Shown here: positions 8,301-61,991 of the stretch, in pieces
Layout: every line of letters starts with the position of its first letter
Position numbering within the stretch: position 1 is the stretch's first letter
Translations under genes and position numbers: made by a program
Notes under the pieces: generated by a model
What the model was told of the DNA's origin: nothing
Databases searched by the model: none
What the model saw: only the letters and a program-made list of their open reading frames with translations
NCBI GenBank assembly: GCA_965153285.1
Contig: OZ229111.1
From: Podarcis tiliguerta
Taxonomy: Eukaryota
Length of the DNA stretch: 64,000 nucleotides
Reading direction: 5' to 3' (one strand)

Positions 8301-11300
8301 GTCCAATGTCTGCAAGCAGAAACAGAATATGCCATTCTGTACCATGCAGGCACACAAATTGGACACGGATGAGTTAGAAATACTAATTACCAATATTTGT
8401 GATTAGATGAATTGTTTGGAAGAATAAAACAAACACCAAGGAACCTTAGGCATAAATTTCTTCTCTTTCAGTAAGTTTACGTACCATAGAAAGGTCAGTC
8501 AGTTTGCAGGCTCAAGGTTTTATCTTTAAACTCAAACATACTGATTCCCTGACCATGTGTCCTGTTTTCTTTCTTTCCCTCTCTCATTTTGCTATGCAGT
8601 GAGTTTGCAGCCACAGTCCACCCATAAGGACTTTGTTTTTCTTTTTTTTTCACATTGCGATGTTTTGTCTAAACTTCTTATAGGGGGATCAAGGTAATGA
8701 TGGCGCTGCTGGTCCGCCAGGTCCTCCTGGACAGCCGGGTGCAAGAGGGCCCCCTGGAGACACAGGAAAAGATGGCCCAAGGGGACCCCCAGGCCTTCCT
8801 GTAAGGCGTAGTTATTAGCTAAGATAACTGTTGAAAACTAAAATGCATGTTTTGCGGGGATATCCTGCTCATGAATGCATTTCAGCTATAAGTTCCTGAG
8901 CCTAGAACTCAGATATATCAAGGTGCTAGGGGAAGGATACAGGCATTTTTGGAGCAAAGAGTAAGAGCGAAGGGAAATCACTCTTCAATATCTTGAAACC
9001 AGAGGCAGAACTCATCTTCAAACTGTTTGCGTTGAACAGGGACGATAATCTAGTCAACAAAGCTTTGTGGTGGCGGCTTGCCTTGGAATGGTTATCTTGC
9101 ATTTTGCAATGAGCTGCTAATATTCTGACAATTCTGCTTGTAGATTCTAGCAATATGGCAGGCTTTGGGGTTTTATCAACATTCAAGTTTCCCTTGCTGC
9201 TGCAGCAGCAATCTCTTTTGGCAGTGCCCATGGGATTGTTCTGTAGGGCAAGCGGTAGTTGTGTCATAAAAATGATCTTCACAGTAGTCTTTTATTAACT
9301 AACCATTCATACTCAGTCCTTAGTCATTAAATTAATCACTAAATTCCCTGCTGTTGAATTAGGAGAATTAACAGTCATTATCTACCAAGCAAAGATAACT
9401 GAGATGAAATACAATTTATGTGTTCAATGTTAATCCACAATAAATAGAACCATAGCATACCTGTATGCATTTTCACTTTGTTAATGACACTAATCTAAAT
9501 CATCAAGACATGGCAACATTTCTACGTTCCCTAAGTCAATGAAATAACTGAAATAACGCAATCTCCTTAAGCTTCTCTTCTTCACTGTTGTGCTTTTTAG
9601 GTGGGAGGGGAGCGTTTTGAAAAAGTAATTTTAGAAATGCATTCATTGTCTCTTTATTTAAATAACTTAGATTTGTGTTTCTTTAGGGTGAGAAAGGACA
9701 ACCTGGAGAAGCTGGTATCATGGTTAGTATGCAATCTATGGTATTAAAACATATCCTAATGGATTGATTTCACATATTAAGCATGAGAAGCTTGCCTAGC
9801 CTACCTCAGATGTGTGTAACCTCCTCCTCTTCCTCATTCTGCTCTATAATAGTTTTATACAGCTCCTTTCCTTGACTATGCTTTGGCCATCTAATCACTA
9901 CCCCTAAATACATGTCTACCATCTGTGCCATGTTGAGTTTAGAACAATTGTCTAGGGCTTATGAAACAGTCAGAGTCTCGTTTGTTTTTACGAGTCAGCT
10001 TTCTGTACTGCACCATCAGAAAAAAATAAGGTGAGCCTCTTTCCCCAAGCACTTTTTCGTTCTCTTCCGTCTTTTGTTGTCCTACAAACATTTTGCATAA
10101 GCTCTTTTGTCAGGACTTATTTAAGTTATTTCTTTACATCAATATTGTAATATTTTTTAATTGCTACATGCACTGACTGTGGCGCATGAGAACTACAAGT
10201 GCCAAAACCTAGACTATCAAAAGACTTGCTGACCTCTTTTTAAGTGTCAGAACATTTGTAATAAGATACCATGCTAGCAAACTTAACTCCCAAGTGTATT
10301 TCGTCATAGGAGAAATACCCATTTCCACTTCTGCATCCTGTGCGTGCTACTGCATGGATGACCCACTGCCCTTTCACAAGCCTTTCAAGGGTACTATATT
10401 TACAGCATCTTGACGTAAAAGATCACAGGCCATGAGTGAAATTTTTATTTATTTTTATTTTTTACATTTATATACCACTCTTCATTTGAGGATCACAGCA
10501 CGGTTTACAATATAAACACACAAAAATATGTAACATAATAACAAATGAAACAACACCTCCACGCAGAGAGATTTTAAAAGGCCACAGGTTGTTTAATTAG
10601 GCAAAGGCCTGGAAGATGAGAAATGTTTCCACATGGCTGCTAAACATATGTTGGTGGTTTGTGGTATATTCTCAGAAGCAATCTTCCCACTGTGTGCCCC
10701 CACCCCACCCCACCACCAATAGGCTAGGATGAGTTGAAAGAACCCCCCAGAACACCGCCTGGGCAGAGGAGAGGGAGATCGTTATAGCAGGCGAGCAGAA
10801 ATGCTCGTGCTGACAGAGCGATCTCCTTAGCTCTAAGCTGAATTACTCCCATCGTGTTTTGAGGACCCACCCTATTCCTGCGACTGTGTTTTGTTTTGAC
10901 TGTTTTTTCTTACTGAATTAAAAAATGCTGAAATCCACCCTGAGACCTGCAGGTGAGGAAAGGGTAATAATCATAGTGGGCAGGATTCAGCTAGTGAGTC
11001 CTGTCAGCACAAGGGCTTCTGTTTGTGCAGTGGGGCTTTCTCTCTCCCTACCCCAATAATTCCCTTTTAAAGCTTGCGGTAAGGAATTCCATAGTTTTAA
11101 CTATGCATTGTATGAAAAAGTGTTTCCTTTTTCTGAATCTTCCAACATTCAGCTACGTTGGATGGCCTCAGGTATTGTGTTTCTATTTAAGTTTTGGGAC
11201 TGGTTACACCCAACAGCCATTTTATAGAGGTGCCCATGTCGCTTCCTCTAAATTGCAAATGGACCTTTGGGCCCCAAAAAGATTGACAGCCCAGCAACAT

Positions 11301-14300
11301 TTTTAATGAGCTTGGCTGCGTTTTGTTTTGTTTTGTTTTGTTTTGTTTTGAAAACGGTACAATTTTATTTGTAACATTTCCTAGACATTGGAAAAAAAAT
11401 GTTTTCATTCCTGATATTTTTAAGTCAAACATAACGTGCTTCACTTATTTGTTTTGAAGGGTGAGCCTGGTATTCCAGGAGGAAAAGTAAGTTATTTATG
11501 TTTCTTTCTTTCAAATGCTATCTGCATTGAAACATCATGTTCCCAACCCTATCTGTCTGTCTGTCCATCTATCTATCTATCATCTATCTATCTATTTATT
11601 TCTACCTCACAACTCAGTTATCACAACAGAGTCACAAAATATCTCCAACTTGAAAGTAAAATAACATGGCAGTTAAAACTACTAAACACATTTAAAATAA
11701 CCTTTTTAAAAACAAAAAACAAAAAAAACCAACAATACAATAGTGCAAAGCAATCCTCTGATCCAGAGCAGACTGTGGTTTGTTTCTTGCCCAGCGCAGC
11801 AGCAGAATGAGCAAAGGAGGAGCAAAGCTCTTGAGATTTCAGTAGCATCCACCAACATCCCAAACTACAGGGGAGTTGTGTAACTATTGCATTGTAATCA
11901 GGGCTAATCACATGGGGCTCACCCATCCATGGATATGATAGATCAAACATTATTCACTCTGTGCTGTTGTATCCCTGAAGCTGATCCAGTACATGAAAGC
12001 TTCTGCCACAACAGTCTTTAAGGTGTAACAAGACTCTGCCATTCTTGCTGCAAGAAGTGATCACAGCTACCCCTCTAGAAACTGTCCAAATGGAGTGGTT
12101 TGCTAATATCTGGACTGGAGTTTTAAGAAGCAAATATCTGTATATATTTCTCCAAGGCAGCTGAGTCGGGGGCAGGATATGTGTGTATTTATTTTGGATT
12201 GTGTTAGCTAAAGATCCTTTTCCATATAATGGACCTTAGAAGGGCCACCAAGTAGCTGTGGCCAAGTTGGAAAACACTTTATTATTAATTCATGCTGTTC
12301 AGAACTGCACATAACCTATGGCTACAGTATTTTTAGGAAACACGTTTAAGGATTACATTTCAGTGTGTTCCACAGATCATGAGTGATGTCTTCATGATTT
12401 ATCCACACTGCAAATAAGACTACTCTGAGCTAATAAATGAAATCTCTCTTTCTCTCTTCTGAACAGTTACAAATTAAGTATTAGAAATTAAGTCCCAACT
12501 TCTGGATCAAAAATATTTGGCAGTTGCTTTTCTGGTTAGGCTTACAGTGTGAACTGTTGAGCTTCTGCCAGCATTGACCCTGGGAAACTTAATGCACTTT
12601 TGTATTTCAGTGTCACCTATGTGTGTTCTATTTCATCAGGGTGATGCTGGAATCCCAGGAGAACCAGGGATTCAAGGGCCAAAGGTAAACTTCCTTTTTG
12701 TAGCTCCCCGCCCCCAATCATATATATTATGGGTAACAAAGTAGAATCAATGCAGTATTGGCATACAGGCTGATCGTGTTAAATTTCAATCCTAAATATT
12801 TTTGGTGATTGAGAGTCATATTCTACACTACATAGAGCAAACTGAATCAGAAATTAAAGATTGTTTTTCCCTTTCACTTTGGTCCTATGGGGCTCAACCA
12901 TTCTTAAAGAATAGCTTGAATAGCCATCAGAACAGCTGTACCGTGTTTAAAGACTGTCATTTAGAGCCTGAATTCTTTTTGAAGGATGCTCAATATTTGG
13001 ACTTTGGGGTGAAAGCAAGATTGTAATGTTCACCTTAATTTGTATTAATCTCAGGGAGAACAAGGAAGTATTGGGCCCATAGGCGAGAAGGGCAATGAAG
13101 GACTACCAGGGCCAAAGGTAAGCATCTCCTTGAATGGTACAGTAAAACTGATGAACACCCTTCTTAGAAAATGAGAGTGTTCTTTGCACTTTTTTTGAAC
13201 GCTACAGGGAAAACAAGGAAGCGTTGGCCCAATGGGAGACAAAGGCATAGACGGTAAACCAGGGCCAAAGGTAAGCAGCGCATGGGAAAGCATAAAAAGG
13301 CTGGCACTTGCCTTGCTCAAAAACTAAGGGTTTTCCACTCCACCTTTTTTAAACACTACAGGGGGAACCTGGAGGCCCTGGCCCAATGGGAGACAAAGGC
13401 AAAGATGGTATACCAGGGCCAAAGGTAAGTGGTGCATGGGAAAGAATAGTAAGACTAGCACCTGGCCTGCTTAGAAACTGAGAGTTTTCCACTACACCTC
13501 TTTCAAACATTACAGGGAGAACCAGGAAGTGCTGGCCCAATGGGAGAGAAAGGAACAGATGGTCTACCAGGGCCAAAGGTAAGCATCTTCTTGAATGGTA
13601 CAGTAAAACTGATGAACACCCTTCTTAGAAAATGAGTGTGTTCTTTGCACTTCTTTTGAATGCTACAGGGAAAACAAGGAAGCGTTGGCCCAATGGGAGA
13701 TAAAGGAATAGATGGTCTGCCAGGGCCAAAGGTAAGGAACACATGGGAATGGATAAAAGACTAGCACATGTCTTGTTCAGAAACTGAAATTTTTCCATTA
13801 CACCTCTTATAAACTCTCCAGGGAGAACCAGGAAGTGTTGGCCCAATGGGAGACAAAGGAATAGATGGTCTACCAGGGCCAAAGGTAAGCAGTGCATGGG
13901 AAAGAATAAAAAAAGCTAGTGCTTGCCTTGGTGAGAAACTGAGAGTTTTCCATTGCACCTGTTTAAAACACTACAGGGAGAACCAGGAAGTCCTGGCCCA
14001 GTAGGGGAGAGAGGCATAGATGGTCTACCAGGGGCAAAGGTAAGCAGTACATGAGAAAGGATAAAAAGGCTAGCACTTTCCTTGGTGAGCAACTGAGAGT
14101 TTTCCATTGCACCTCTTTTAAACACTCCAGGGAGAACCAGGAAGTCCTGGCCCAGTAGGGGAGAGAGGCATAGATGGTCCACCAGGGCCAATGGTAAGGA
14201 GCACATGGGAGTTGATAAAAAACTAGCACATGTTTTGTTAAGAAACAGAGTTTTCCATTGCACCTCTTTTAAACACTCCAGGGAGAACCAGGAAGTCCTG

Positions 14301-17300
14301 GCCCAGTAGGGGAGAGAGGCATAGATGGTCCACCAGGGCCAATGGTAAGGAGCACATGGGAGTTGATAAAAAACTAGCACATGTTTTGTTAAGAAACAGA
14401 GTTTTCCATTGCACCTCTTTTAAACACTACAGGGAGAACCAGGAAGTCCTGGCCCAGTAGGGGAGAGAGGCATAGATGGTCTACCAGGGCCAATGGTAAG
14501 GAGCACATGGGAGTTGATAAAAAACTAGCACATGTTTTGTTAAGAAACAGAGTTTTCCATTGCACCTTTTTTTAAAACACTACAGGGAGAACCAGGAAGT
14601 CCTGGCCCAGTAGGGGAGAGAGGCATAAATGGTCTACCAGGGCCAATGGTAAGGAGCACATGGGAGTTGATAAAAGACTAGCACATGTCTTGTTAAGAAA
14701 CAGAGTTTTCCATTGCACCTTTTTTAAAACACTATAGGGAGAACCAGGAAGTCCTGGCCCAGTAGGGGAGAGAGGCATAGATGGTCTACCAGGGGCAAAG
14801 GTAAGCAGAGCATGGGAAAGAATGCTAAGATTAGCACAATCCATACTTAGATACTTAGAGTTTCCTATTGCACCTCTTTCAAATAATACAGGGAGAACCA
14901 GGAAACATTGGCCCTGTGGGAAAAAGAGGCGTGAGTGGTCTACCAGGGCCAAAGGTGGGTATTACATGGGAAAGGATAACAAGATCCTAAGCACATAGCC
15001 TGCTAAGAAACCAAGTTTTTCCATTCTCCCTCTTTCAAAATTGACAGGGAAACCGGGGAAGCATTGGCCCAACAGGGGAGAGAGGCCTGGATGGGCTACC
15101 AGGGCCAAAGGTAAGCAGTGCATGGGAATGACGGCTAAGATTTAGCACATGCCCTGCTTGAAAACTTAAAGTCTTCCATTGCACCTCTTTCAAACACTAC
15201 AGGGAAATCCAGGAAGCATTGGTCAGACTGGGGAAAAAGGCATAAAAGGGCAACCAGGAGCAAGGGTAAGCAGCACATCAGAAAATATACTAAGACTTGA
15301 TGATACCTGCTCAGAAACTGAGAGTTCCATTGCCCTTCCTTAAACACCACAGGGAAAACGAGGAAGCGCTGGCTCAGTGGGAGAGAGAGGCATAGATGGG
15401 CTACCAGGGCCTAAGGTAAGCAGTGCATGGAGAAGAATGCTAAGATTAGCCTATGCCCTGCTTACCAACTGAGAGTTTTCCACTGCATCTCTTTCGAACA
15501 TTATAGGGAGAACCCGGAAGCATTGGCCCAATGGGAGAGAAAGGCTTAGATGGTCTAGCAGGGCCGAAGGTAAGCAGAGCACGGGAAAGATTGTAAGGTT
15601 GTTTAGTTCATTTAAGTTTATGTATATGGCACCTTTGCACAGTGAGCTGTTCCTAAAGCAGCTTACAACAAATTCCCTTTTTCCTATTAAACTGCAAAAC
15701 ATTGATTGGGGAGAAAGCAGTTTTGTAAAGACAACAACAATTCAGCAACAAACGTAGAATATACTGTCTTCAATATTACAAAAATATAATCTAGACCTAA
15801 CGCCTTAGAGCAAAATGAAAGTTAACGGACAATAAATACAGTACAGCAGAAGAATGGTCTTTTAACTAGATGGTTCACATCTGGCTTCCTCATCTGTCCT
15901 CCAGAGGAGGCTGACAGAAACAGAGGGCAGTGCTGAGGATGGCAGTGGTGGTGACTCTTCTTACCCAGCCTCCCAGATGTCCAGCTGCTTGTACTGGTCT
16001 TATTGCCCTGCTTAAAAATTGAGAATTTTCCATTTCACGTCTTTCAAACATTGCAGGGTGAACCAGGAAGCCCTGGTCCAATAGGAGAGAAAGGCATAGA
16101 TGGTCTACCAGGGCCAAAGGTAAGCAACGCATGGGAAAGGATAGTAAGATTAGAGCATGCCCTGATTAGAAACTGCGTTTTCCATTGCACCTCCTTTAAA
16201 TATTACAGGGAGAACCAGGAGGCAATGGCTCAGTAGGAGACAAATGCATTGATGGGCTACCAGGGCCAAAGGTAAGCAGCATATGGAAAAGGATAGTGAG
16301 GTTAGGCATCATTCATATCAATGCAAGCATATCTGCTTGCTTAACAAAACAATCTCCCCTCTCCTACCCTCTCCCCACTGATCTGGGGGTTCTCCCACCC
16401 ACTCCAGCCAATGGCAGGGCACAGGGGGAGGAGAGGGAAGGAAATTGTGCTAGTAGAATGCCTTGTGCGGGCTTCTGCTAGCAGAATCTGGATCCAGCCC
16501 TGGAACTTTTCCATTGCACCTCTTTCAAACATTTCAGGGAGAACCCGGAAGCCCTGGCCCGACAGGAGAAAAAGGCACAGATGGTCTACCAGGGCCAAAG
16601 GTAAGTGGCGCATGGGAAAGAATAGTAAGACTAGCACCTGGCCTGCTTAGAAACTGAGAGTTGTCCATTGCACCTCTCTCAAACTTTACAGGGAGACCCA
16701 GGAAGTGTTGGCCCAACAGGAGAGAAAGGCACAGGTGGCCTTCCAGGGCCAAAGGTAAGTATCACATTGGAAAGGATAGTGAGACTAGCACCTGGCCTGC
16801 TTAGAAACTGAGAGTGTTCCATTCCACCTCCTTCAAACATTACAGGGAGAACCAGGAAGTGTTGGCCCAATAGGAGTGAATGGAATAAATGGTCTGCCAG
16901 GGCCAAAGGTAAGTATCAAATGGGAAGGATAGTAAGGTCTGGATATGAACATGCAAAATGCTTCATTCGCAATGAAATTGCAACTTGCATTTACAGCAGC
17001 ATCCCCTCACATCTAATGGGATGTTTCACTGCCATGCTCTCCAACATTCAGGAGCAGCTTATCAGATGTTTGAAGAAAACTTTTGTAGCTGAAAAAGTCC
17101 ACATGTAGAAGACTTCCCTTGGATCATAGCCCAAGACTAGTATTAACCCTGCTTGGTAACAGAGAGCAAAATGAACTATGGTAATCAAATGTATGCATCA
17201 AAACACAGGTGGTCATTTTTGTTTCAGGATGATGACCATTTTGGATCAGAGCGATGTTGGGAGGGTCCTGCTTAATCTGCCCCCCAACTGCTTCTTTTCT

Positions 17301-20300
17301 TATGTAACTCCTTCCCCTCCCAAGCCTCTTCCTTTCCATATGATTCTCGGTGTATGTTTTACTTTTGGAACACGCACAAGACATGAATGGTGCAGAGCAG
17401 GGTATTTGCATGCTTACTGTGAAATGGTGAGGTCCGGGTTCACATGAAATTCCGTTTCATGTTGAATTGGTGAGACAGCTTGAGCCCTTTTGTCTATGTG
17501 ATGGTGAATGCTGAAAAGCAGGGCAGCTAGTGTGGTTTAAAGAGCTGTATGCACTTGGATTTCCACATGGGAGGATGGCGATGGAATGAGCTTTGGCTGG
17601 TATTGGCACATAGCTATCAGAAATTGCTAGTGTGCTCGCAGGGCTTCTGGTGCTGCACATCCAACTTCCCATACCTAGTGACCTCAAACCCTGGCTCTTT
17701 GAACGTTTTATCCTGCACTTATGGAGCTCTGTCCTCCACACCAGGCACCATTAAATTAGAACAAAAACTGCCAGATTAAGGCAAATTGAGATAGAACGTT
17801 CATTTTCTCTGCTAATACAGGATAAAAAACAATACTGCATTAATTTTTTATGAAATAAAATGTAGAATCATTCTAACATAAAGACATGCAGAGTAAAAAA
17901 AACACACACAAACACGAATCTGCTAATTAATTTAATGCATAGTAATTCAATAATTTGATTACCAGTACAGGAAATGACAACAGAGTGTACAAATTTTAAA
18001 AGTCCCTACAGCAAACGACATTATTTCATAGATGGCATGTTTATTTGCTCTGGTAACAGGAAGAAGCAAATAGGTTAGTTTGGAAATACTGTATCATGAA
18101 ATCAGGATGGAATGTAAAATAGCATAAGTACATTTGTTTCGCATGATCAGCATAACATTAGCCCAAGGAAAATAGAGAACTGAAATATTTTCAAGAGTTG
18201 GGAGTCCTTTTCCAAAAAATAAAAGAGAAGAAGAGGAGTTTGGATTTGATATCCTGCTTTATTACTACCCTAAGGAGTCTCAAAGCAGCTCACAATCTCC
18301 TTTTCCCTTCCTCCCCCACAACAAGCACACTCTGTGAGGTGAGTGGGGCTGAGAGACTTCAGAGAAGTGTAACTAGCCCAAAGTCACCCAACAGCTGCAT
18401 GTGGAGGAGTGGGGACACGAACCCGGTTCACCAGATTACGAGTCCACCGCTCTTAACCACTACACCACACTGTATCTGTAATCAGCCTCTTCTAGGGCAT
18501 TGTATCATATGAGCTGCAGGTTTCTTTATTACCTGAAAATTTTCTGATCCATGGGTCACCAATGCAGTGTCCAACATAGAGGGATTTTTGTGGGGAGGAT
18601 CTTTCTGGAGATTACAGCTGGGGTGCTCTTGCTTCCACTGCCCACCCCCAAAAAATAGGCTTGGAGGAAAAAAAATTGAAATTTCTTCAGATTGCAACTG
18701 TGCCCACAAACCCAAAAGGGGTGGTGACCCCTATTCTATTCTGAATGTCAGGCTCAAAGCAAAATGAAGACCTATAGATGAAATATAAATAAATCATAAT
18801 CTCCATTTAAGAAGGATGCCCAGTCTAGACTTGAGTTAAAAGTGTATTTGCATTTAACCTGCAAGTTTTTTGCAATGCAAATTGCTTCGGGGGGGGGGGG
18901 GTTGTTGATAATTAGTAATGTCAGAGCTAATATGGAGAAAGAATCTAACCCTTTCTTCCTCTGCTGAGGGGCTGAGGAAATCGCCTCTGATAATCCCTAT
19001 TTGATTCATAGAATCCTAGAACTGTAGAGTTGGAAGGGACCCTAAGGATCATCTAGTCCAACCCCCTGCAATGCAGGAATATGCAACTGTCCCATACAGG
19101 GATCGCACTTGCAAACTTGGCGTTATCAGCACCAGGCTCTAACCAACTGAGCTCCTTTGAAATAAAATACCAGATACAGAAGAGGATTGTTTTCCCTGGA
19201 CCACAGCAGAATTAAATTCCCTCTCCATATTGCCTCTGGTAATTATCCTGGCCACCAAGCAATTACAATTTGCATTCTTAAAAACCTGCCATGATGCACA
19301 CAAAACTGCATTACTGTAGGAACAGCAGGTCTCATTTAAGCCTCCTACTTTTTCAGTCTTCCAGGAAAGAAGATAGGTGTGATATGAAATGATAAAACAG
19401 TAAACTGGCCAGCTGCATTGAGCTAGATGCCCCTGACATATGACCATAATGGTGATACCTTTCTTGCTTTCTGAAGCACCCACCCAGCTGAACTTAATAG
19501 CTTTTCCCCACTAAAGGAGGAAGTGGAGCAAGCCAGCAGAGGGGACAAAAATGTATGGCTTGAACCAGTGCAACGTTCATTGGTATGCTTCTCTGTTCAA
19601 TCAGTTAGGAAGATGGGAAAAGAGTGTTCTTTTAATTGCCTCTTTGGTCATTCCAAGATAAAATATTTTAGAACTGATTATGTAATTTTTCATGAGTCTT
19701 CTTCTTGAAGAAAGGGAAACATTTGTTTATGCTATGTCCATTTAGACAAGTTGTTAATCCTTTAGAGCTAATCTGTATTTCATGAAGTCTGCATCAAATT
19801 TACCTTCCTCTTTATTAGGTTATAGCTCTTTTTATGCTGGAAAAACTGAAGAACGTAGTGTTTCAGAATACCTACAGTAAATGTGGCAACTATCTTAATT
19901 TATAAAGATTTGACGTGCTAGAGTGTCTTTTTGCTACTTGCCATGTTAATTTTTCATAAACTACAGAGATTACAAAAAGAAATATTTGACAGTGTAAACA
20001 ATGCAAGCACAAAATACAATATGTGAAAGCAAAAGTATAATCGTGACATGATTAGGTTTATATGCCAGGCTAATTTCTTGTTCAAAAGTTAGTTGGTTTT
20101 GCAGCAGTGTGGTGTGCATATTGTTACACTAAAACCTGCAGGGCGGTTTTATTATCTTGTATCTGATTTGGCTGATTTGTTTTGCAGCTGGATTGTGTGA
20201 AGGTCTTTTAAGCCTGCTATTGCTTATGCTGTGCTCCTCAAGACACATAGATATGTGACGTATCTTGTCTCTGAATCAATATTTTAGAGTAACAAACATT

Positions 20301-23300
20301 TATTTTCAGGGTGAACCTGGTGAAAGAGGAGCAGATGGACACATTGGGCCAAGGGTATGAATTACTTTTGTTCTTTCCTTAGCTTGCTAAAATAAACACT
20401 CAAGCTGAAATAAACATACACTGTGAGATTTGTGGAAGATAAATTAACTATGGTTCCATCATTTAACTCAAAGGGGATTTACTACTGAGTAGACATACAT
20501 AGAGAATTGCACTGTTTGGCTGCAGCCCTATAGCTGCTTCCCTTTGAATAAGCTCCTTTCGAAACTGACTTCTTATTTACTTCTGAGTAGACAAGCATAG
20601 GATTGTTGTGCTAAAGCATAGAGGAACAAAAATATTTTCATAGCTCATGACATTGAGAGCGTGCTTGGAGGATTTCCCTGGTGGAGGAATTCCATAGTTG
20701 TGTTGCTACTACTGCAAAAGCATCTGCCAAGGTTATCTTAACTAATGATGGCTCTAAGAGCAGGACCTCCAGTACCCAGTGGGCCTTAATGGGACTGTCA
20801 CAGCATAGGTGGTTTATTCCACTTTCATCCAGTGAACAGTTATTATCTAGACTGTAGCAATTAAAGCACCGTATTTAAGTATGAAACTAGAATTTACTGT
20901 GACTTCTTAATAGCATGTGAAAAGCAGAAAATTATTTCTATTCCCATAAAGTTTACAATTACCTTTTCTTTTCTTTGTAGGGTCCTCCAGGCCTGAAAGG
21001 AGAACAGGGTGATACAGTAGTAATTGACTACGATGGTAGAATCTTGGAAGCTCTCAAGGTAACCTTTATGATAATAACGTGATAATTATACAATTTGCTT
21101 CAACATGAAGTGGCACTAAATTTTAGTAACATTAGAAGAGCCCTGATACATCAGACCAAAGGGTGATTTGGCTCAGTGTCCTGTTTCCCACCTTTGGAAA
21201 GCCTACAAAGAAGGACATGATGGCAAGATTGATAGAATCAAAAGTCCAACATACAAGCCAGTTTGAGGAATTTGGGCATGGTCCACAGAAGCCATAGCAA
21301 AATGTCCATGTTGCCAGAGCTTTTTGCTACAACTCCACCACCAAATCTGTCATCAAAAGCAAGGGGCAATCAAGGGCAAAGGACCTTGAAAGAGAAATGT
21401 TATGACAAGGCAACAATGTCTGGATGCTCTGGAAGGAAGTGAGAGTCAAATGTGGAATCCTTTATACAGTTCATGCTAGGCTAGTGCAATAATTTGTGCC
21501 TATAGTGGTATCTATGTTGTTTCTGAATAGGCCAAAAGCAGCTAAGCTATTCAGTGTGGTGACCATCAAAACTGTTTTTAGAAACCACTAGAAACAGCTG
21601 TAGGCAAATTCAGGCACATCTGGTGGAAGTGACTCACAAATGAAATAAGCAGCTCTTTGTTACTTAGCGGGTTGTAACTTCCATAATGACTGCAAGGAGA
21701 CTGATTGGGGTAGAATTTCAGTTTGTCCTTTCAGATCAAATGGGGGGGGGGGTTATATAATAATGTTCTCAACAATAAAAAATGTTTAGATGATGGTCTT
21801 TTCAATTGGAAAAGTATTTGAATAGCATAAATATTTAATTCTTAATACATTTGAAAATTATTCTAACTGTTTTATAACAGGCTGCAGGGAAACTCAGATT
21901 GACGGTAAAATTGTTATGTGCCAGATGCCTGTGTGGATTTGTTTTTTTTAATGGCTTAGCATGTGGCTTTTCTGCTTTAGATTTTTTGATCATGGTCCTC
22001 AGAAATTTTCTACCAAACATTTGATTTCTGTTAACAAAATAATGACATAACCCCTTAGGTTGAATCATTGGCAGCATGATGTCAGACACAGTGATAATCA
22101 AGTAATGAATGTGTTTAATTGCTTTGTTTCATAGTTTCTGGCTTGCTTCTTTAAAATTGCATTAGGCATTATTTTGAAAATATACTTCACATTTCATATT
22201 GAAATCAGTGGGATTTAAGAGTGCTTACGTTTGGCTCACTACTCCCATCATCATTACATTAAGATGACAGAACTCCCAAGGGGAGATGTCCTCTGTCCTA
22301 GCAAGGTGTTGCTCTAGAAATCTGCAAGGGAAACTGTAGCTGTGCTCTGATGGTTGAGAATTCTGAAGACTCCTTTGGAGACAGGCAGAAAAAGCAGCAG
22401 GGGGTCATAGAGCCACTGCCCACCTTTCTCTATTGTTTCTGATCATCCCCTTCCCAGCCTCTTGGGGAAATTATCTACTTTATGGAAGATGGACTTAAGT
22501 TAGAAACTAAATGACCCGCTAACCATAGATTTTGTTGCCAGTTGTTTTTCATCTCTGTTAATTCAAAATGTTTGTATTAACAGCAGTTAACAGATAATTT
22601 GCTGTCTTTTGTTCCAGGGCCCACCAGGTCCCCAAGGGCCCCCAGGCCCCCAAGGAGCTCCAGGACCAAAGGTTGGGTTTTACTCCCTTTTACATAAAAT
22701 GTATTTTGTTCTGTACTGTACTCAGTACCTGCTTGGCAACACTCAGCTTGGTTTATATGTGAATCTTCTGTTCATGACATATCCCCTTGGATAACTTTGG
22801 GGGAGTCAGAGTGGTGGGTAATGTGTTCAAAGTTTCAAAATTAGCAAAGGGAGAAGAATTTTAACAAGTGTCTATAAACACTTGTTTGTGGGCCCAGGCA
22901 TAGTGAGACCATGGTGCAGATGGCAAAGGAAGCAAGAGGCCACAATTTTATTGGTTCCAGACAAAACAGTGTTGCCAATGGCATTGGGCATGAATTGAAT
23001 GATCAAATAGCCCACATGCTGGCTGAAGATCCTCTAGTTTAATCTCTGTTTGGAAAGTTTGTTGAAAAGTCACCAGGTCACAAGCGGTATAGGGCTTTGT
23101 CTCGGCTTAAATAAATTTGACACTTCCCTTGAAATATGTAACATTAATCATGCACCTTTAAAATATTGAGTACTGCAATATATAGTTATTTGGTGGAGGC
23201 GGAAAAGATTTTTATTGGTTAGATTCATGATGCGGCCATTGCTCTGATTTATCCCTTTTTTTGTTCCAGGGGGAACTTGGATTGCCTGGCCCACCTGGAG

Positions 23301-26300
23301 TTGATGGAGAGAAGGTGTGGGGGGCATTATTAATAAATTTGTATTCAATTGTGTGACTAAAGTTCTGTAATAGGCTGAAGCTACCTATTAAATGTTTAAG
23401 AGTTACTAAAGTGGTTGGAATGCATGCAGTCTTCAGAAGCAAATATAAGCAAACAGCAAACTCTTCATCCTGCAGTTTTCCCAACCATTCCATATTCTTG
23501 GAATATGGACAACCTACTTGACAATCTACTAATTTTTAATCTGCATGGCATGTGGGGTGTGTGTATGTGTGTGTGTGTGAGGAATACAGAGACAATAATT
23601 GTAAATATATATATATTAATTGCAATGGTTTTAATTTTGATATGATTTGGTCTCTGTGAGGTTCACACCTGATTGTCATTTCCCAAATAAAGTATTCAAG
23701 CAACCGCAACTAAAGCTCTCCTCCACCCTCCAATCATTCCTGAGCACAGAGAGGGAAGGCAGTGCCATTATCCTATGTTGCATCTTTCCATCCGAGTCTT
23801 TATTAAGCACCCCTCCACGATACATGATCAAATTATTGCAGTCAGTAATTTAATTTACATCTAATTCAAAATAAATACTTAAGATTGTTGTGTGCAGGAT
23901 GAGTGTGTGCATGTCCGAATCTTTATTGAAGTTTCCTGTGCTTTGAAGTGGTCACATCCACGTGATCTATTAAATTCCATTCCACTTCTTAATCAGTGTT
24001 TGATTGTCAGCCATTCCTCTAACACAATCAAAATAAAAAATATTGCAACAGAGTAACACTGGAAAATAATAAATACTATTAATTAAAACCCAATTATCTT
24101 ACATTCCACCCCCCCCCCCCCTTTAAATTACAGGGTCCTAAAGGTTCGAAAGGAGACCAAGGAAGCTCCGGACTCATAGGACAAAAAGGAGAGAAAGGAG
24201 ATGTTGGCCTGAGTGGTCTCCCAGTATGTCTGTTTTCAATATCTATTACTAAATACTGTTTTCACAGATACAGTTGTTTGGTATACAAGGTGCATTACAC
24301 ACACACACTATGGGAAATGGGTGTGTAAGTGCATGGTATAGCGTCTCTGATAATCTGAGGGGTGGGGAGATCCCTGAAGGAATTCATAAAGCTGCTTGGA
24401 AAACAAGGTTAGATTCCTACATAGAGCCTCCTCACAGAGGCTCCCTGAGAAAGTCATGGTCCACACTTTAAAGAGATCAGTAGGCCCTTTTTTGGCTGGA
24501 GCCTGGAATGGCCACTTTGCCCTCAGTCAGGGTGGCATCAGCTGCTGCAGTTCTCAGCATCTGTTCACTAGCAGGATTTGTGTCCAGCCTGTCTCCTCTT
24601 TCTGTTCTATTTTGGCTCCCCAGGTTTTTGCACATCCCACTAACTCAGCTAGTATCTGGACAAGATGTGCAATCTGATAGGTAACAAGCAGCCTGAGGGT
24701 TCTTTTCTTTTCTTTTTAAAGTTCCTGTGACTTCTTTTGGCAAAACAACTCCCTCCCCTCAAATTCTATCCTTCAGTTTAAAAATCTGCATTTGTGTTTA
24801 TGGGTGGTGTTCAACTAAGGTTTAAGGTTCAACTAAGGAGACCCATTGAAATTATGGAACATGGCTGAGTTAGGTCCATTCATTTCATTGGTTATGCTCT
24901 CGTAAAATACCACCCTCTGTGTTCCCAGCATTCTTTCTATGGCTGCATCTGCACACATAATGGAAAAGGGTATTTGTTAGGGGACTGGGGTGATAGATGT
25001 AGGTTGTTATTTGAGCAATTACATTTCCAAGTAACAGTAAGGGACTCTGTTGTCCACTTGTCTGCAGTGAGTATCAGATCTTTTAATAAAAGAGCTTTCT
25101 GGTGCTTCCATTCAGCACCTACCGTTTACATATGTTTTGTGGGCTGACAGATGTTTTCTAGCAGGCTGTATTAGGAAATTATTAATTTTAGCTTATAGAA
25201 ACTTGTTAAAGGAAAGTGCCTGTCAGTATATGTGTATAATACTGACCTGATTTTCCCTTGCCAAGTCTGCCAACCCCTTTTCAGAGTTCGCAGACTACTG
25301 AATATGGAGGGCTACTTTGGGTGGGCATGTGCAGAATGTGTGTGTTCATAACTCTGAATCTATCTGGTGATGAGGGGGGGAAACATGCTTTTCCCTTACA
25401 TTGTAGGGTCCGAAAGGATTGAAAGGAGACCAAGGAAACCCTGGAATAGCGGGAGAGAGAGGCGAGACAGGAGAAATGGGCTTGTCTGGTCCACCGGTAT
25501 GTCTGTCTTCAACATAATTCAGGACTAGACGGTTGTCATAGATGCTAATTACCAGAAAAAAGTTAATTTTCACTTGTGTGTATTATATATCAGGGGCTTA
25601 AGAGCATAAGCATAAGAAAGAGAAACATAAGCCTCGCTCGATCAGGCCAAAGGCCCATCTAAGTCCAGACTCCAGCATCCTGTTCTCTGAGTGTCCAGCT
25701 CAATTCCACTTGTGAATCTCTTCGCCTCACACTGCCTCTGACAGTGGAGGAAGAGCATAGATACACTAGCTAGTAGCAGTTGATAGCTGTTTCCTCCATA
25801 TGTTGTTCTACTCATATTTTAAAGCCATTTGAGTTAGTGGCCATCACTGCCTCTTGTGGGAGCAATTACCATGTGTTATCTGTGCGTTGCGTGAAAAAGT
25901 GCAGCACAATTCAACCCACACAGACTTCTATAAATGTGTCTTCAGAGGTTTTTAAAAGACTAGCAGTTATTAAACCAGCTCCCTGGGGTTCCAAAAGCAT
26001 GGAAGAGAGTCTTTTCTCCGTTACCTGACACTCTAATGGCTCTTGCCTCCAAAGCCAATGCTTTGGCAAGCTCAGGCAGGTACAGGTGACTCTTTAGATA
26101 ACACTGCCTCTTAATCATTTGAGGCTTTATTCATATGCTAGCAGGATGGGAACTGCTTTTCTGCAGTGTTCTGAACCTGAATCCTGGAGTCAAATTAGAG
26201 AGGTGAATTGTTTTGAGTCCTTCCTGGGAGTGAGGGTTGTGATTGGGTCGGAAGGAGCCATGTGACTGGCCTCACAGACATGGGTTGCAGGTGCATAGAC

Positions 26301-29300: not shown

Positions 29301-32300
29301 CATATCTGGGGAAGGGGAATTTGGGGGTCCAGGTTGAATAAAAAGTGAACAATGTACACTGTTAAACACTTTCAGTCTTAAAATTTATTTCTCTTTGTTA
29401 CAACTGTTTGAATGTGGACATTTGTAGCGACACACATATTGGTGATCACAGATTGGTAAGACATTTTCCAGAAAAGGATGCACATTGCCATAGGAAGTAT
29501 ATTTATGGATATTTGGCAGGGGACGGTGAAGTCAGGGTAGGCTCCTTTCTACAATTTTAGAATCCCTGACAACTTCATTATACATAGTTAGATCAAACTT
29601 CTATTTTGTTTAGATTGGGGTGGGTTTTTTAACCCATGATAATGGGGTGGGGATACAAACAAATGTATTCTACCTAGAGAGGAAGTCTGATAGCTGTGTG
29701 TACAAAATGAAAGATGTACTAGGGATACTTTAAGCATTCTTTAACAAATGAACTATTGCTGTCTTTAGGGTCCTCAAGGAATACAGGGGCATAAGGTGAG
29801 TCTATTACCTAAATGCCATGTGGTTTTTCCAACCTACGTTAAATATCTTTGTTGAGATCATGGCATAGTAATATGTGCCCTTGCTTGAAATTCTGCTATT
29901 TTACTTCTTGCTGAGTACAATTTATTCATGTTATTTAATTATATTGTTGCCAAAGGATACACACTTGAGCCTATCCCTACAGATTTCTTGGGAGGGGAAT
30001 GTTATCCTTCCCTTTCTTCCTTCAGTTATTTTTAATGTTAAGGCAAATAACTTTTACATTTGCCTTAGTCCATGAATGATGCTTGATACCATTTTCTCTT
30101 GTAATTATTTTTCAGTAGCACCTTAGAGACCGACTAAGTTTGTTCTGGGTATAAGCTTTCATAATAATATATATATATCATAATTTATTATTTATACCCC
30201 GCCCATCTGGCTGAGTTTCCCCAACCACTCTGGGCGGCTCCCAATCGAGTGTTAAAAACAATACAGCATTAAATATTAAAAACTTTCCTAAACATGTGCA
30301 TGCTTATACCCAGAACAAACTTAGTTGGTCTCTAATGTGCTACCGGACTTTAAAAAAAAAAAAAATCTTGTAATTATGAATCTTTAAAAAAAATTAAGGG
30401 GAGATATATTGATCAGTTAATCCTTTTGTATATTGGCCAAAATACTGCGGCATTGCCTACTTCAACAGCAAACTAAAAGTTGACAAATAAATAAATGATA
30501 GGTAACATCAAGAACATGCCGAGACATTTCGCTTCACTGTTTCCTAGACCTTCCATGATTCTGTGTCCTCAGCATGTCAGTCACCTTCTGGCTGTTCAAA
30601 CTCCCTTTAGAGTTACCATTTATTGACACTATTTTTAATACATTTACTGTTAAATTTTATAAGACAAATGGGACATGACATAAGCTACCAGTTTTGCTCT
30701 TCATCTGTTTTCCCTGTTCATATTTAAAGAAAGGGAAGTGGTAGGATGTAATTTTTTATGACAAGATTCAGAAAAGATGAACTGAATGGACCACTTTGCC
30801 TCTCATCCCCATTTTCCCCAGAGCAGTGGGGTATGGCAGGGCCAGGATTGAGCTACCTTTACCAACCAATCTATAAAAATTAAACACACAGCCTCACTTT
30901 AGAGATGAACAAACATGGCTGCCCCCTGGTTTTTCTCACTTGGCTTTAGGAGTTGATATTTCTGTCTGAAAGGAAAATTTCCATGCTCACAGCTTCCTTC
31001 CACACTGAAATATAATGTAGATTTCTAAAGAAAAATGCAATGGGTTATATATGGTTTCATCTTAAAGAATACTTTTAGAATGTTAACTTTAAGACGTTCA
31101 CCATTCACCAAAACCTGGTGTAGAACAACTGCATTTAAAGTTCTAGCTTTGTGCCTTATTCTTTTCAGGCTATAGGTTGGCCAGTAACATACTAAGATGA
31201 CAGCATTCTAAAAAAGAAAAAGAAAAACAGTTAGGCCTGTCTACTGTAGCCACATCATCTGAATTATGCAGGCATATTTGCATGAGTGGCTTCTGTTTCT
31301 CTCTACATCTAAATAAAATGTCTGAAAGATAAATATTATGGCACAGGCATTGAGGATTTGAGGATAAGGCTTGAATTACAGATCAACTTTCCCCCCAACC
31401 TCCCTTGTATTTTCTTTTCTCATATGCATCATTGATATCTTGCAGGGTCCCCAAGGAATTCAAGGACACAAGGTGGGTGACTAAAATTGTGCACACCATT
31501 TATGAATTGAACTGGAACTGAGCACAAGGACAAACCACTTTGACCACTGAAGACTAACTAAGCTTATCCTAGAGCAGACCCTGCCCTACAATTAGGCACA
31601 CCCACCCACCTCTGTCTTCCCACAGAAGGGTAAGGCCAGGGGCCTTGGGTGAAAATAACATGGGAGGCTGACCCTGCTGCCTTCCAGCATCTGCTGACAG
31701 AGCTGGCTGTCTCATTTGGCCTAATCGAGAGCCAGTGTGGTGTAGTGGTTAAGAGCGGTAGTCTCATAATCTGGGGAACCGGGTTCGTGTCTCCGCTCCT
31801 CCACATGCAGCTGCTGGGTGACCTTGGGCCAGTCACACTTCTCTGAAGTCTCTCAGCCCCACTCACCTCACAGAGTGTTTGTTGTGGGGGAGGAAGGGAA
31901 AGAAGAATGTTAGCCGCTTTGAGACTCCTTAAAGGGAGTGAAAGGCGGGATATCAAATCCAAACTCTTCTTCTTCTTCTTCATAAGAACCCAGGTTGAGA
32001 TCTTTCAGTCACTTCCCAATCTACCACCAGTCAAATTCCTTTCTGATTCAGACCATGTGAGTTTCAGAAACTAAGCAAGAATTCAGGAATGGAATTATAC
32101 TGTTCATAACTCATAGCTTTGGTTTGAAATTTTCTTATGCAATCTATTTTTTAAAAAATGCTTGTATAACTTTATATAAGCAAATAAAGGGTATGTTTGC
32201 ACTTGCCCTTTCCCACAAAATCCGCTGCTGCTGCTGCTGTCACCAAGATCAGTGTTTCATTGTTCTACTATCTCTCCCCACCCTGCAATCTCTTGTTCCT

Positions 32301-35300: not shown

Positions 35301-38300
35301 TTCAGATTATAAAAGAGCTTTGATTTTTCTGTTGTGTCACAGGGAGAAAGAGGACTTCCAGGTAGAAAAGGAGCAAAAGGGCAAAAGGGAGAGCCAGGGC
35401 CGCCTGGATTGGATCAGCCTTGTCCAGTGGTATGGTTTGATATTGCTGGGAATATATGTTTGCTTTAAATTATCTTCGTTGCTTTTTGACATCTGAAGCA
35501 CAAAAAGGTTTCTGGAGGCAGACTCCTTTGAATTTGGATAATGGCAGAAGGCCAATAGTTCCATCTCACTGGCCTTTCTTTTTATCATGATGCTGGAATG
35601 TCACTTTCTTGATGTACATGTTTTAGGGTAGACACAAAATGGGAAAGGCACCTCATATGCAAATCAGCAATCAAAGAAAGGAACCCATGAAAAAAACAAT
35701 GTAACTGCTCACTGAGCTTAACAGTAGGAGGACAGAACAGAAACCAAGCACACAATAGGCACAAACAGATGGTTCGTTCTTCAAGCCAGTTTTGATTTAT
35801 TTCAGTCCTGTATACAGGCAGTGACCATTTTTGGCATGTCTGATATGTGCGCAACTGCGTACAATGTGCCAAACCCAGAAGTGACAAAAAAACACCACAA
35901 AAAGGGACGGGGCAGCCTTAAATATCTTGAATATCATGGACAGGCATGTGGGAGTCACATACCGGTGGGTGTGCCCACAGACGAAAATCATTGGAGCGAT
36001 GGATGTGACTCTTACATTAGGCTGCATTTTGGCCATGCAAAAGTCAGACGTTCTACACACACCTGTCTACCCTACCTCCAGGCAAGCAAGAGGCATCCTT
36101 GCCGTTGAAGGACACAAGGAAAGCAGCCCCAGAGGGTGTGGGGACAGGGCCAGTGAGGGGTGTGGCCTGGGGAGAGTACAAAGGGCCGGATAAGGGAGGC
36201 CTGGAGGACCACATTTGCCCTCCAGGTCAGAGATCCCCCATGCTTAACATTTCTGTAAGCTTCTGAATTATTTCTTCACTTTTTTCTGTTCCTTCTTTCC
36301 TTTTGCTTTCTTATAAACTTTTCTGTGTATTTCTCCATTTTCAATTAACAGTTCATTTTTAAAGGGGAGCCAGGTTTACCTGAACTGGATGGTGTGGAGA
36401 TGCTCTGCCCTTTGGTATAGTATCCCCCCTTTCTTTCTTCTTTTGCATGACTTTTTCTGCATAACTTAGCCCTTTTCTTGCATAACATAGTCTTTTTCCG
36501 CTTTCTCCCTTCCTTTCCCTCCATTCTTTTATAGGAAAATGTGGCCAGAATTTGTCAGGTGTCTGTATGACTTGTGAAAGACCAAACGTTGTACAGACAT
36601 ATGGAAGAACTGACATTTCACAAGCCGGGGCATGCTCCAGTTCGTTCCACCCAGATTCATGCCGCGTTGTGAAACTAAATGCTTATATATTTTTAATTCT
36701 AGAGTCTTGCTTTGTAGCCAAAGGTCTGTCACACACACACACCCCCCCAAGAGCATTGCTGGATCTATAGAGATATAAAAAATGCCATTAAAATGCTGTT
36801 GGGGGGGGGAACGACGACGCTCCCAAGGTATCTGCCATTGACTTTAGATTTTGCTCTATAGCACCATCTAGTGTCACATTTTTATAATGCATTTTTAGCA
36901 TTATAAATTGACCTGTGTAGCTGATTTGCAAGAAAGAAAATGGTTTGCGAGCAAGGAAAGTATTTTACAATTGATAGCCAGAAACTAAACCTGGAAACAG
37001 TATGGATAATATGCAAAGAATGCTTTACCTAAGATAGGTAGGGAAGATGTTCATGCCTCTGCTTGTCCATTGGCATTATACTTCCCATTTTGAAAGACAG
37101 CCATTCACCAGTCAGTCTCCCATGTCACAAAGTTGAGCTAAGAGATACTGTCTGAGAGTTGCCTGAAATAATTTTACTTATATTGGTATTGAGTTTATCC
37201 TTGTATAGCTCTTTCCTCCCTTCATCAAACTCATATTACAGCATGAAACAAAACATATTAAAATAAAAAAACAAAATTTGCTTTAATACGGAGAGCTGAT
37301 GAATTTTTTAAGCAATTGTTTATGAATTTGTTTTATTTGTGAAATACATGGAATGTGATTTGTTCCTACATACCTACTTTTCAAACACAGCACATGGTTT
37401 TTGTATGGATATTTCCAATACGTTTATGGTAATGGTAGGTCTTGCAGATCCATCATATATGGGTGTGTGTGTGTGTGTGTTGCTGTTATGATACACTTAG
37501 TGCTTTCCAAGAATACAAAATTGTTACTTACTTTTTGCAGGGACCAGATGGATTACCAGTACCAGGATGTTGGCACAAGGTATCGTACCCTACCTTAGAT
37601 TTTCTCTTCGGCTTGAATTAAGATAGTTGCTTAGCAAGAGTAATAGCATGGAACTAATACATAATAGAGCTATTTTGTAAAGGAAAAGGGGGGAAAGGAG
37701 GAGAAAATGAACTGAGGCAAATGTAGATATCTTTGCTAAATACCCGATATTAATATAGCCATCATAGAGGGATTAGACCAAAGAGACAAGAAACTCAGCA
37801 TTTTGCTTATGAAATTATGACTAAAATTAATTGGTCAGGAAATATGCCAACTTATTCCTGCTTGATTCTATCTTTTTGATTCTATGCCTGGCAAATAAAT
37901 CTGGTTTTATTTCCATTTTAATGCTGACTTTGCATCTTGCTTTCATGTCTGCATTATGCTATATATTTTTTAAAAAAACATTTAGATTAGTGCAAATTTA
38001 GGGCAGAGCTGCCCATGATGGTGGCAAACCAGTGTCCTTGAATGCAGGCCACAATCCACAGCAGTAAAATTGTGCTGGCAGGCAGCAATTTCTATGAGAA
38101 GCAGAAGGTGAAAGTGGGCCCTCACCATAACCCTCTTCTTAAGTTATTTTTCTGAGTCAGGTTTTAATACTAGAGCTGCATCAATTTTGGATTTCCATAC
38201 AGGGGGAAATGGCTCTGCTGCCATGGCTGCTGAGACTCTTTCTGCAAATACTTCATGCTCCCCCACACCTATATGACACTTTTCAATGGGCATAAAGCCA

Positions 38301-47306: not shown

Positions 47307-58087
<10,781 letters not shown>

Positions 58088-61511: not shown

Positions 61512-61991
61512 TCAATATGGCTTGTAGTTATTCTGATGACCACGTCTTGGAGCTTTCCCATAATTTGAACTTCCTTGACCTATAAACAAGAGATCAAATG
61601 CATTAAACTGCTATTAAGTTATGCTTGCATATACCTAATACAGTTCTCTTTACTTACTGTAATCATAGCCCGGTCCATATCCAAAATACCCATATCCTGA
61701 ATAATCATAGCCTCCATAGCCATCATAACCTTCCTGATAGCCGTATCCTTGACTCCCATAACCCTGGTTCCAGTAATTGCCATAACCTGGACTCCAATTT
61801 TGACTTTGAGCTATAGAAAGGAAAACCATCCACAAAATCCCATTTTAGTATAGAGTTTTGTTTTAGAATGTGTCCATACTAACGTACTGTGCATAATACG
61901 TACCTCTTCTTCCACCTCTTCCTCGGCCACCCCCAGATCCAAATTGTTGTTGCTGATACACTTCTTTCGGTTGTGCAACCTTTATCTCACA
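61512..61991 (-). CDS. HNRNPAB: Heterogeneous nuclear ribonucleoprotein A/B, last three coding exons (5'-partial)
   Basis: Minus-strand exons 61991-61904 [29 protein letters not shown], 61810-61658 [19 protein letters not shown]...GYGPGYDY, 61579-61512 [22 protein letters not shown] (PY-NLS); canonical splice sites with consistent phases. Confidence 0.93.

Follow-up and report, generated by a model that had tools for sequence, protein, structure and literature searches.

A tandemly amplified collagen exon as a probable alternative cassette block in a MACIT gene of the lizard Podarcis tiliguerta

Organisation of the locus

We analysed a 64,000-nt stretch of Podarcis tiliguerta DNA (assembly GCA_965153285.1, contig OZ229111.1), referred to below as the window, which appears to carry a membrane collagen gene of the MACIT family, most likely that of type XXIII collagen. 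Within this gene one small exon and its intron are present as a tandem array of 22 copies (u1 to u22; Table 1). The array is real, under selection and expressed. A preliminary description, made from the DNA letters alone, had proposed that such an array might give a much longer and splice-tunable transmembrane collagen.

The window, which contains no N, was scanned mechanically for an AG followed by an in-frame Gly-X-Y run and a GT. The scan returned 22 successive 63-nt phase-0 exons, from 13055-13117 to 16846-16908, each with seven Gly-X-Y triplets. Every exon had an AG before it and a GT after it, with no stops and no exon indels. Gly occupied 153 of the 154 triplet first positions, the sole exception being a Cys in u19 (16209-16271), and Pro filled 26% of the X and 31% of the Y positions, as is usual in collagen helices. 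The introns were 87-93 nt long except for those after u17 (487 nt) and u19 (266 nt), and the unit length was 151-156 nt. Neither intron insertion had a second copy within the window. Donors were AAG/GTAAG-like in 20 of the 22 units, and the acceptors were (c/t)ag preceded by a purine-interrupted pyrimidine tract.

Tandem Repeats Finder reported an array with a 154-nt period at 13159-15589 and 16510-16936. When the window was searched with the entire unit as a DNA profile, the number of copies was again exactly 22, and decayed ones were absent. Since this profile recovered the same 22 copies only, the coding competence of all of them is not a selection effect of the scan. The exon and Gly counts, the intron lengths with two insertions and the flanking exons at 12640-12684 and 20310-20354 were all reproduced as first described.

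Table 1. Features of the collagen gene in the window; a joint written u2>u3 links the donor of u2 to the acceptor of u3
Feature	Coordinates	Strand	Evidence
Constitutive 27-nt Gly-X-Y exon, upstream	11460..11486	+	Joint 11486>12640 (GT..AG), four runs
Constitutive 45-nt Gly-X-Y exon before array	12640..12684	+	Joint 12684>13055, four runs
Whole array, 22 x (63-nt exon + ~90-nt intron)	13055..16908	+	Tandem Repeats Finder, exon scan, unit DNA profile
u1, founder-like, constitutive; own upstream intron	13055..13117	+	In dominant contigs of all four runs
u2, cassette exon	13208..13270	+	Joints u1>u2, u2>u3 in X7
u3, cassette exon	13362..13424	+	Joints u2>u3, u3>u6 in X7
u4, exon; downstream intron near-identical to that of u1	13516..13578	+	AG/GT and frame intact; no spliced joint seen
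u5, exon, 90% identical to u2	13669..13731	+	Exon scan; no spliced joint seen
u6, cassette exon	13822..13884	+	Joint u3>u6 in X7; partner unresolved by 31-mers
u7, exon, edge of homogenised core	13977..14039	+	Exon 100% identical to u12; X7 loose-end match only
u8, exon, core; last residue Met, not Lys	14131..14193	+	Identical to u9; contigs not uniquely placeable
u9, exon, core	14282..14344	+	Exon scan; 14200-14399 uncovered by all four runs
u10, exon, core	14433..14495	+	Exon scan, unit comparison
u11, exon, core	14586..14648	+	Exon scan; contigs seen are unspliced only
u12, exon, core edge	14738..14800	+	Exon scan, unit comparison
u13, cassette exon, donor GTGGGT	14892..14954	+	Joint u13>u14 in X1, X7; 6 pair-unique 31-mers
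u14, cassette exon	15048..15110	+	Joints u13>u14, u14>u15 in X1 and X7
u15, cassette exon, most diverged array copy	15203..15265	+	Joints u15>u16 (X7), u15>u18 (X1)
u16, cassette exon	15353..15415	+	Joints u15>u16, u16>u17 in X7; skipped in X1 minor form
u17, cassette exon	15507..15569	+	Joints u16>u17, u17>u18 in X7
487-nt intron, ~400-nt insertion	15570..16056	+	Precisely removed in X7 joint 15569>16057
u18, cassette exon, near array consensus	16057..16119	+	Joints u17>u18 (X7); u15>u18, u18>u19 (X1)
u19, cassette exon, single Gly-to-Cys break	16209..16271	+	Joints u18>u19 (X1), u19>u20 (X7)
266-nt intron with insertion	16272..16537	+	Removed in X7 joint 16271>16538
u20, cassette exon	16538..16600	+	Joint u19>u20 in X7
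u21, exon	16692..16754	+	AG/GT and frame intact; no spliced joint seen
u22, final array exon	16846..16908	+	Exon scan; contigs seen are unspliced only
Constitutive 45-nt exon after array	20310..20354	+	255-letter loose end in X1, X5, X8 placed there
Penultimate-type exon: Gly-X-Y run, then short non-collagenous stretch (QPCPV), GT donor	35343..35429	+	
Exon with MACIT C-terminal motif, peptide end CWHK, then GT donor	37541..37579	+	

Sequence constraint among the copies

For each unit the alignment took in 50 nt and 42 nt of the intron sequence at its sides. A maximum-likelihood tree was built from the units, changes on it were counted by Fitch parsimony, and Nei-Gojobori proportions were summed. 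Mean pairwise diversity was 0.006 at positions 1-2 of the Gly codons, 0.19 over the whole exon and 0.32 in the deep intron. The alignment columns showed the same contrast. Of the 14 columns at Gly positions 1-2 one was variable, compared with 39 of the 49 other exon columns and 64 of the 66 deep-intron columns. The 66 deep-intron sites had undergone 199 changes (about 3.0 per site). At that rate about 42 changes were expected over the 14 Gly position 1-2 sites and one was found (Poisson probability of at most one change, ~1e-17); at the four AG/GT positions none was found against about 12 expected. The X and Y codon positions changed 1.4-3.7 times per site, near the intron rate. The ratio of nonsynonymous to synonymous proportions (pN/pS) was 0.025 for Gly, 0.58 for X, 1.6 for Y and 0.64 overall. 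Exon indels were absent, while nearly every array intron had its own length.

This check of Gly-codon constraint, together with the diversity and parsimony counts, bears out the purifying selection on spliced coding exons that had been proposed. Because Gly and the AG/GT dinucleotides are conserved while the introns and the X and Y codons drift, selection on the copies, and not minisatellite decay, has shaped the array. The copies have thus been kept as spliceable, in-frame triple-helix segments. A neutral minisatellite or a set of dead exon copies was also considered and rejected, as the decay was unequal across positions and no stops, frameshifts or lost splice sites were present.

Transcript evidence

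RNA evidence came from Logan contigs over 11400-17399. Runs that matched the window and were guessed to be RNA belonged to organisms A, B, C and D; the contigs were those of X1, X5 and X8, which come from three studies of organism A, and of X7, from organism B. These are short-read de Bruijn contigs (k=31). Contig depth is a poor gauge of abundance and was used only to see which form assembled. Organism A was about 3% diverged from the window, with at least 99% identity in 10 of 30 contig records. Organism B was the nearest to the window, with at least 99% identity in 15 of 26 records and the same version of exon 9687-9722. The joints 11486>12640 and 12684>13055, with the GT..AG intron removed, were present in all four runs, which are therefore cDNA.

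The dominant form in organism A ran from 12684 through u1 directly to exon 20310, skipping u2-u22 (X1, X5 and X8; depth 51-82, in records 1204 and 1727 nt long). These contigs continued for at least 255 letters past 13117, and the first of these letters occur once in the window, at 20311. A transcript with only one copy, which the preliminary description had named as an outcome contrary to its proposal, is therefore the dominant one in these three runs, and this is offset by the array-containing form in X7. Minor joints within the array were also present in X1 at depth 2-7, namely u13>u14, u14>u15, u15>u18 and u18>u19. Unspliced contigs of organism A were colinear with the window over 13139-13541, 15237-16085 and 16842-17399 at ~96-97% identity and spanned several units and the 487-nt intron, showing that the array is conserved in this organism. 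As u16 and u17 are present in the X1 unspliced contig at 15237-16085, the u15>u18 joint represents genuine internal skipping.

In X7 a 360-nt contig (depth 13.7) led without branching from the end of exon 9687-9722 through 11460-11486 and 12640-12684 into u1, u2, u3 and u6. Other X7 contigs (depth 12-33) joined u13 through u18 in succession, and u19 to u20. No end joining u1 to 20310 was reported among the X7 contigs. We also noted X7 loose ends at 13820 and 13975, where u6 and u7 were joined to an exon end that differs by 1 base from that of u6 and is absent from the window. This exon end may be an allelic variant or an extra copy, and it hints at copy-number or sequence polymorphism.

Because the copies are similar, we counted junction 31-mers unique to each exon pair as a test of mis-threading in the assembly graph. 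Such 31-mers (4-22 per joint) were found for u2>u3, u13>u14, u14>u15, u15>u16, u15>u18, u16>u17 and u17>u18, with 15 for u2>u3, 6 for u13>u14, 22 for u15>u16 and 21 for u15>u18; the u1>20310 joint had 7. The pair-unique 31-mers imply that these seven array joints and u1>20310 are not products of graph mis-threading. At u1>u2, u3>u6, u18>u19 and u19>u20 an exon-exon junction is certain, and the identity of the partner is not. In total, the four runs gave eleven GT..AG joints of the array, or thirteen with the two constitutive ones. Twelve array exons had joint evidence (u1-u3, u6 and u13-u20), and u7 had a loose-end match. The joints fell at the predicted sites, and at least two forms differed by whole exons, as in a cassette-exon array. 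It follows that mRNA includes no fewer than 12 of the array exons and that the array is used alternatively. The array joints, the array-less form and the u15>u18 skip agree with the splice-tunability that had been suggested.

An artefact of assembly, affecting the array itself or its copy number, could be suspected from the core, where the neighbouring units u8-u11 are 94-100% identical and are not covered uniquely by any run, and from the X7 exon-end variant that the window does not contain. However, most copies differ by 10-30%, and the independent contigs, which come from other studies and include a second species, follow the order of the window through several units and both intron insertions. 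Furthermore, six genome-sized runs from three further organisms held 60-83% of the sampled words. We therefore regard an artefact as very improbable, and the uncertainty of the assembly is confined to the copy number of the core.

The difference between the runs might instead be a difference between species. Organism B, taken as the species of the window, would include the array constitutively, and organism A would have largely silenced it. The array-less runs were all from organism A and the sole array-rich run was from organism B, which is closer to the window by both the contig identities and the version of exon 9687-9722. Organism A also differs from the window at four positions (13192, 13193, 13200 and 13203) of the pyrimidine tract before u2 (13183-13207), and these differences are a candidate cause of lower use of the proximal acceptor there. 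On the other hand, organism A still makes low-depth array joints from units that are intact and colinear, and a single run of organism B is too few to call inclusion constitutive. We consider this explanation rather unlikely; it is compatible with the array being an alternative cassette block.

Origin and relatives of the array

The upstream intron of u1 is unrelated to those of the other units, and its exon is the most diverged, with 68-79% identity to the rest. Thus, u1 looks like a founder-like copy. Its downstream intron (13118-13207) is near-identical to that of u4 (13579-13668) and differs in type from the other array introns. Moreover, u2 and u5 share 90% exon and 86% intron identity, with the first 32 nt in common. 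The likeness of these introns and exons indicates that a two-unit block, from the donor of u1 into u2, was copied or converted to u4-u5. The 3' flank of the constitutive u1 therefore also takes part in the dynamics of the array.

The units u7-u12 form a homogenised core, in which the exons are 95-100% identical and the introns of u8-u11 are 91-99% identical. Mean intron identity between units is 69%, rising to 99% in the core, and the edges of the array are old. This pattern would fit repeated unequal crossing-over. As the introns can still be aligned, the amplification is apparently recent enough to observe, and ongoing.

We searched 1.84 billion representative proteins with phmmer, using one array exon with short stop-free flanks (16042-16134) as the query, and found no protein with many copies of the array exon. 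There were 12 matches, ten of which were set aside as collagen-like proteins unrelated to the gene, bacterial or phage as judged from their sequence. The other two were related. These were the Logan genomic open reading frames (ORFs) P0001 and P0005, on contigs of 914 and 1099 nt, in which both the exon and the intron-encoded flanks matched, with 65-77% identity to every unit of the window. P0005 also matched, with unchanged spacing, a frame-shifted translation of a unit lying before it, which puts a minimum of two tandem units in its source. A protein search with the 93-aa stop-free ORF around u18, for which only proteins of 51-163 aa were eligible, gave two candidates and none that was significant. 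The likeness of P0001 and P0005, together with an intron divergence between units of up to ~30%, suggests that the amplification is old and extends beyond a single species.

Assignment of the gene

The collagen gene extends well beyond the array. More than 20 further Gly-X-Y exons lie on the + strand from 8684 to 35414, as in MACIT genes, whose several collagenous domains, with interruptions, are encoded by small phase-0 exons of this kind, and the exon at 8684-8800 matched Pfam Collagen (PF01391) with 30.4 bits, over the cut-off. In vertebrate MACITs the C-terminal region is extremely conserved and closes with W(H/N/Q)K (PMC4678570), and the CWHK of exon 37541-37579 follows this rule. A scan of the window for a terminal exon with W(H/N/Q)K and an immediate stop found none, the motif exon continuing into its donor. 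The stop after CWHK must be in a further exon, or the frame would read on for 13 codons if the intron were retained. These features support membership in the MACIT family, which comprises types XIII, XXIII and XXV. The other end of the gene, with the exons for the cytosolic N-terminal tail, the transmembrane segment and the furin site of NC1, is upstream of the window.

The collagen gene is followed, on the same strand, by class-III aminotransferase exons at 49834-57540 (+). The ORFs at 50942 and 53898 matched Pfam PF00202, for which a score of 38.2 bits was obtained, and there are look-alike ORFs at 49834, 53115 and 57280. This gene is probably the PHYKPL orthologue. Convergent with it, at 61650-62090 (-), are Gly/Tyr-rich, RGG-like ORFs that resemble the C-terminal exons of hnRNP A/B and had no Pfam match, as expected for low-complexity tails. 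The order of collagen, aminotransferase and hnRNP presumably matches COL23A1-PHYKPL-HNRNPAB, whereas COL25A1 would adjoin ETNPPL with no hnRNP neighbour. Type XXIII is the most likely assignment on this presumed synteny.

Smaller duplications were also seen elsewhere in the gene. The 90-nt Gly-X-Y exons at 24134-24223 and 25407-25496, 1.3 kb apart, are clear paralogues with a common start (GPKG.KGDQG). Their donor flanks are near-identical (gtatgtctgt), so this is a second, smaller exon duplication. The 27-nt exons at 29769-29795 and 31446-31472 encode the same nine residues with codons that differ at several third positions, and are a further duplicated pair under protein-level constraint.

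Discussion

The explanation that we consider likely is that a MACIT exon and its intron were amplified in tandem to the 22 copies of this assembly, and that these are under selection and are used as an alternative in-frame cassette block. Unequal crossing-over would have multiplied the unit of a 63-nt exon and a ~90-nt intron. In this scheme u1 would keep its original upstream intron and act as a constitutive exon, and the other 21 copies would be in-frame cassettes. The donor of u1 would have two possible partners, the acceptor of u2 at a distance of 90 nt and that of exon 20310 at 7.2 kb. In the first case the array exons would be spliced together over near-minimal introns, which may be recognised by intron definition, with occasional internal skips. 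When the proximal acceptor is bypassed, u1 would be joined to 20310 to give the canonical short chain. Because every exon is phase 0 and has seven triplets, any combination would stay in frame and in helical register. Each included exon would add 21 residues or ~6 nm of helix, up to a maximum of 441 residues and ~126 nm; the figures first given for full inclusion were correct.

Several observations weigh against this explanation. The dominant mRNA in three of the four runs has only u1, and no short-read contig holds the array end to end in one molecule. For the much longer chain that had been proposed, at least 12 exons occur in mRNA and the assembled form of X7 contains the array, whereas inclusion of all 22 exons in one molecule is putative. 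No joint was seen in the four runs for u4, u5, u8-u12, u21 or u22, partly because near-identical copies cannot be placed, and pair-unique 31-mers were zero for the four joints u1>u2, u3>u6, u18>u19 and u19>u20. None of the contigs of these runs fell within 14200-14399, and the copy number in the near-identical core u8-u11 is accordingly provisional. The four runs cannot separate tissue regulation from a species difference. The X and Y positions are almost neutral, with little constraint on the array sequence beyond Gly, and the Gly-to-Cys change of u19 interrupts the Gly-X-Y run. The collection of 1.84 billion proteins also holds no long-form annotation to corroborate an array protein.

Some of these observations would also be expected if the array were a tolerated by-product. 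The short u1-only protein would then do the work, inclusion would be splicing noise, and Gly and frame would be kept because broken copies poison the trimer. The dominance of the array-less form in X1, X5 and X8, the near neutrality of X and Y with an overall pN/pS of 0.64, and the want of an annotated long protein among the representatives are all in line with this. However, the loss of splice sites would then be neutral or even favoured, and yet all 44 AG/GT dinucleotides are intact. In addition, the X7 contig with the constitutive exons enters the array directly, and no u1>20310 end was reported in that run. We therefore find a tolerated by-product improbable, and favour the use of the array as a cassette block.

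In collagen XIII (COL13A1) and in col-99, a MACIT of C. elegans, in-frame collagenous exons are skipped in complex ways, whereas the alternative splicing of collagen XXIII is inadequately documented (PMC4678570). The present array resembles the former in that phase-0 Gly-X-Y exons of a MACIT are dropped in combinations, the frame being kept and the ectodomain length varying. It differs in that the skipped exons of collagen XIII and col-99 are single, old and unrelated and account for a few tens of residues, whereas here 21 paralogous tandem copies would nearly double the chain. Neither an exon array in COL23A1 nor isoforms of collagen XXIII in lizards came to light in full-text searches of the literature.

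In the classic 54-bp exon model, a small Gly-X-Y exon unit was amplified and so gave rise to the collagen genes. The array likewise consists of a phase-0, whole-triplet exon and its intron multiplied in tandem; however, the amplification of the model is ancient and inferred from exon sizes, while the introns of the array can still be aligned. In-frame tandem blocks of exon units also give size-variable proteins in LPA (kringle IV-2), nebulin and titin, and the titin and nebulin blocks are alternatively spliced. There the unit measures kilobases and encodes a folded domain, in contrast to the 151-156 nt unit here, which encodes a featureless rod segment and for which copy-number polymorphism is only hinted at. 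With its ~154-nt period, homogenised centre and diverged edges the array is also like a non-coding minisatellite, but it differs from one in its position-specific constraint (Gly, frame and splice sites) and in its spliced RNA.

More tentatively, the array might serve as a regulated length switch, a proposal that we hold to be possible but short of probable. Inclusion of the block, in whole or in part, would vary between tissues and in lizards about double the distance to which the rod of the membrane collagen extends from the cell surface. Ongoing unequal crossing-over would render this length heritable, with variation among individuals and species. MACITs are homotrimers. Since mixed lengths in one cell would mis-register the homotrimers, the choice would be expected to be made per cell type. 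Both the protein product and its regulated length function are inferred.

What is new here is an in-frame collagen exon that has been amplified in tandem and is used as an alternatively spliced block. The growth of collagens by multiplication of Gly-X-Y exons, usually seen as an ancient footprint, would here be in progress, with the new copies selected and entering mRNA. For the study of splicing, 21 near-minimal introns in a row, with an all-or-none bypass in which u1 is joined to an acceptor at a distance of 7.2 kb, offer a tractable model of block skipping. For matrix biology, a membrane collagen that is still poorly understood would be available in naturally occurring long and short forms, in which ectodomain length could be related to shedding, adhesion and basement-membrane reach. 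If the length switch is true, the array would amount to a natural experiment on the reach that a membrane collagen requires.

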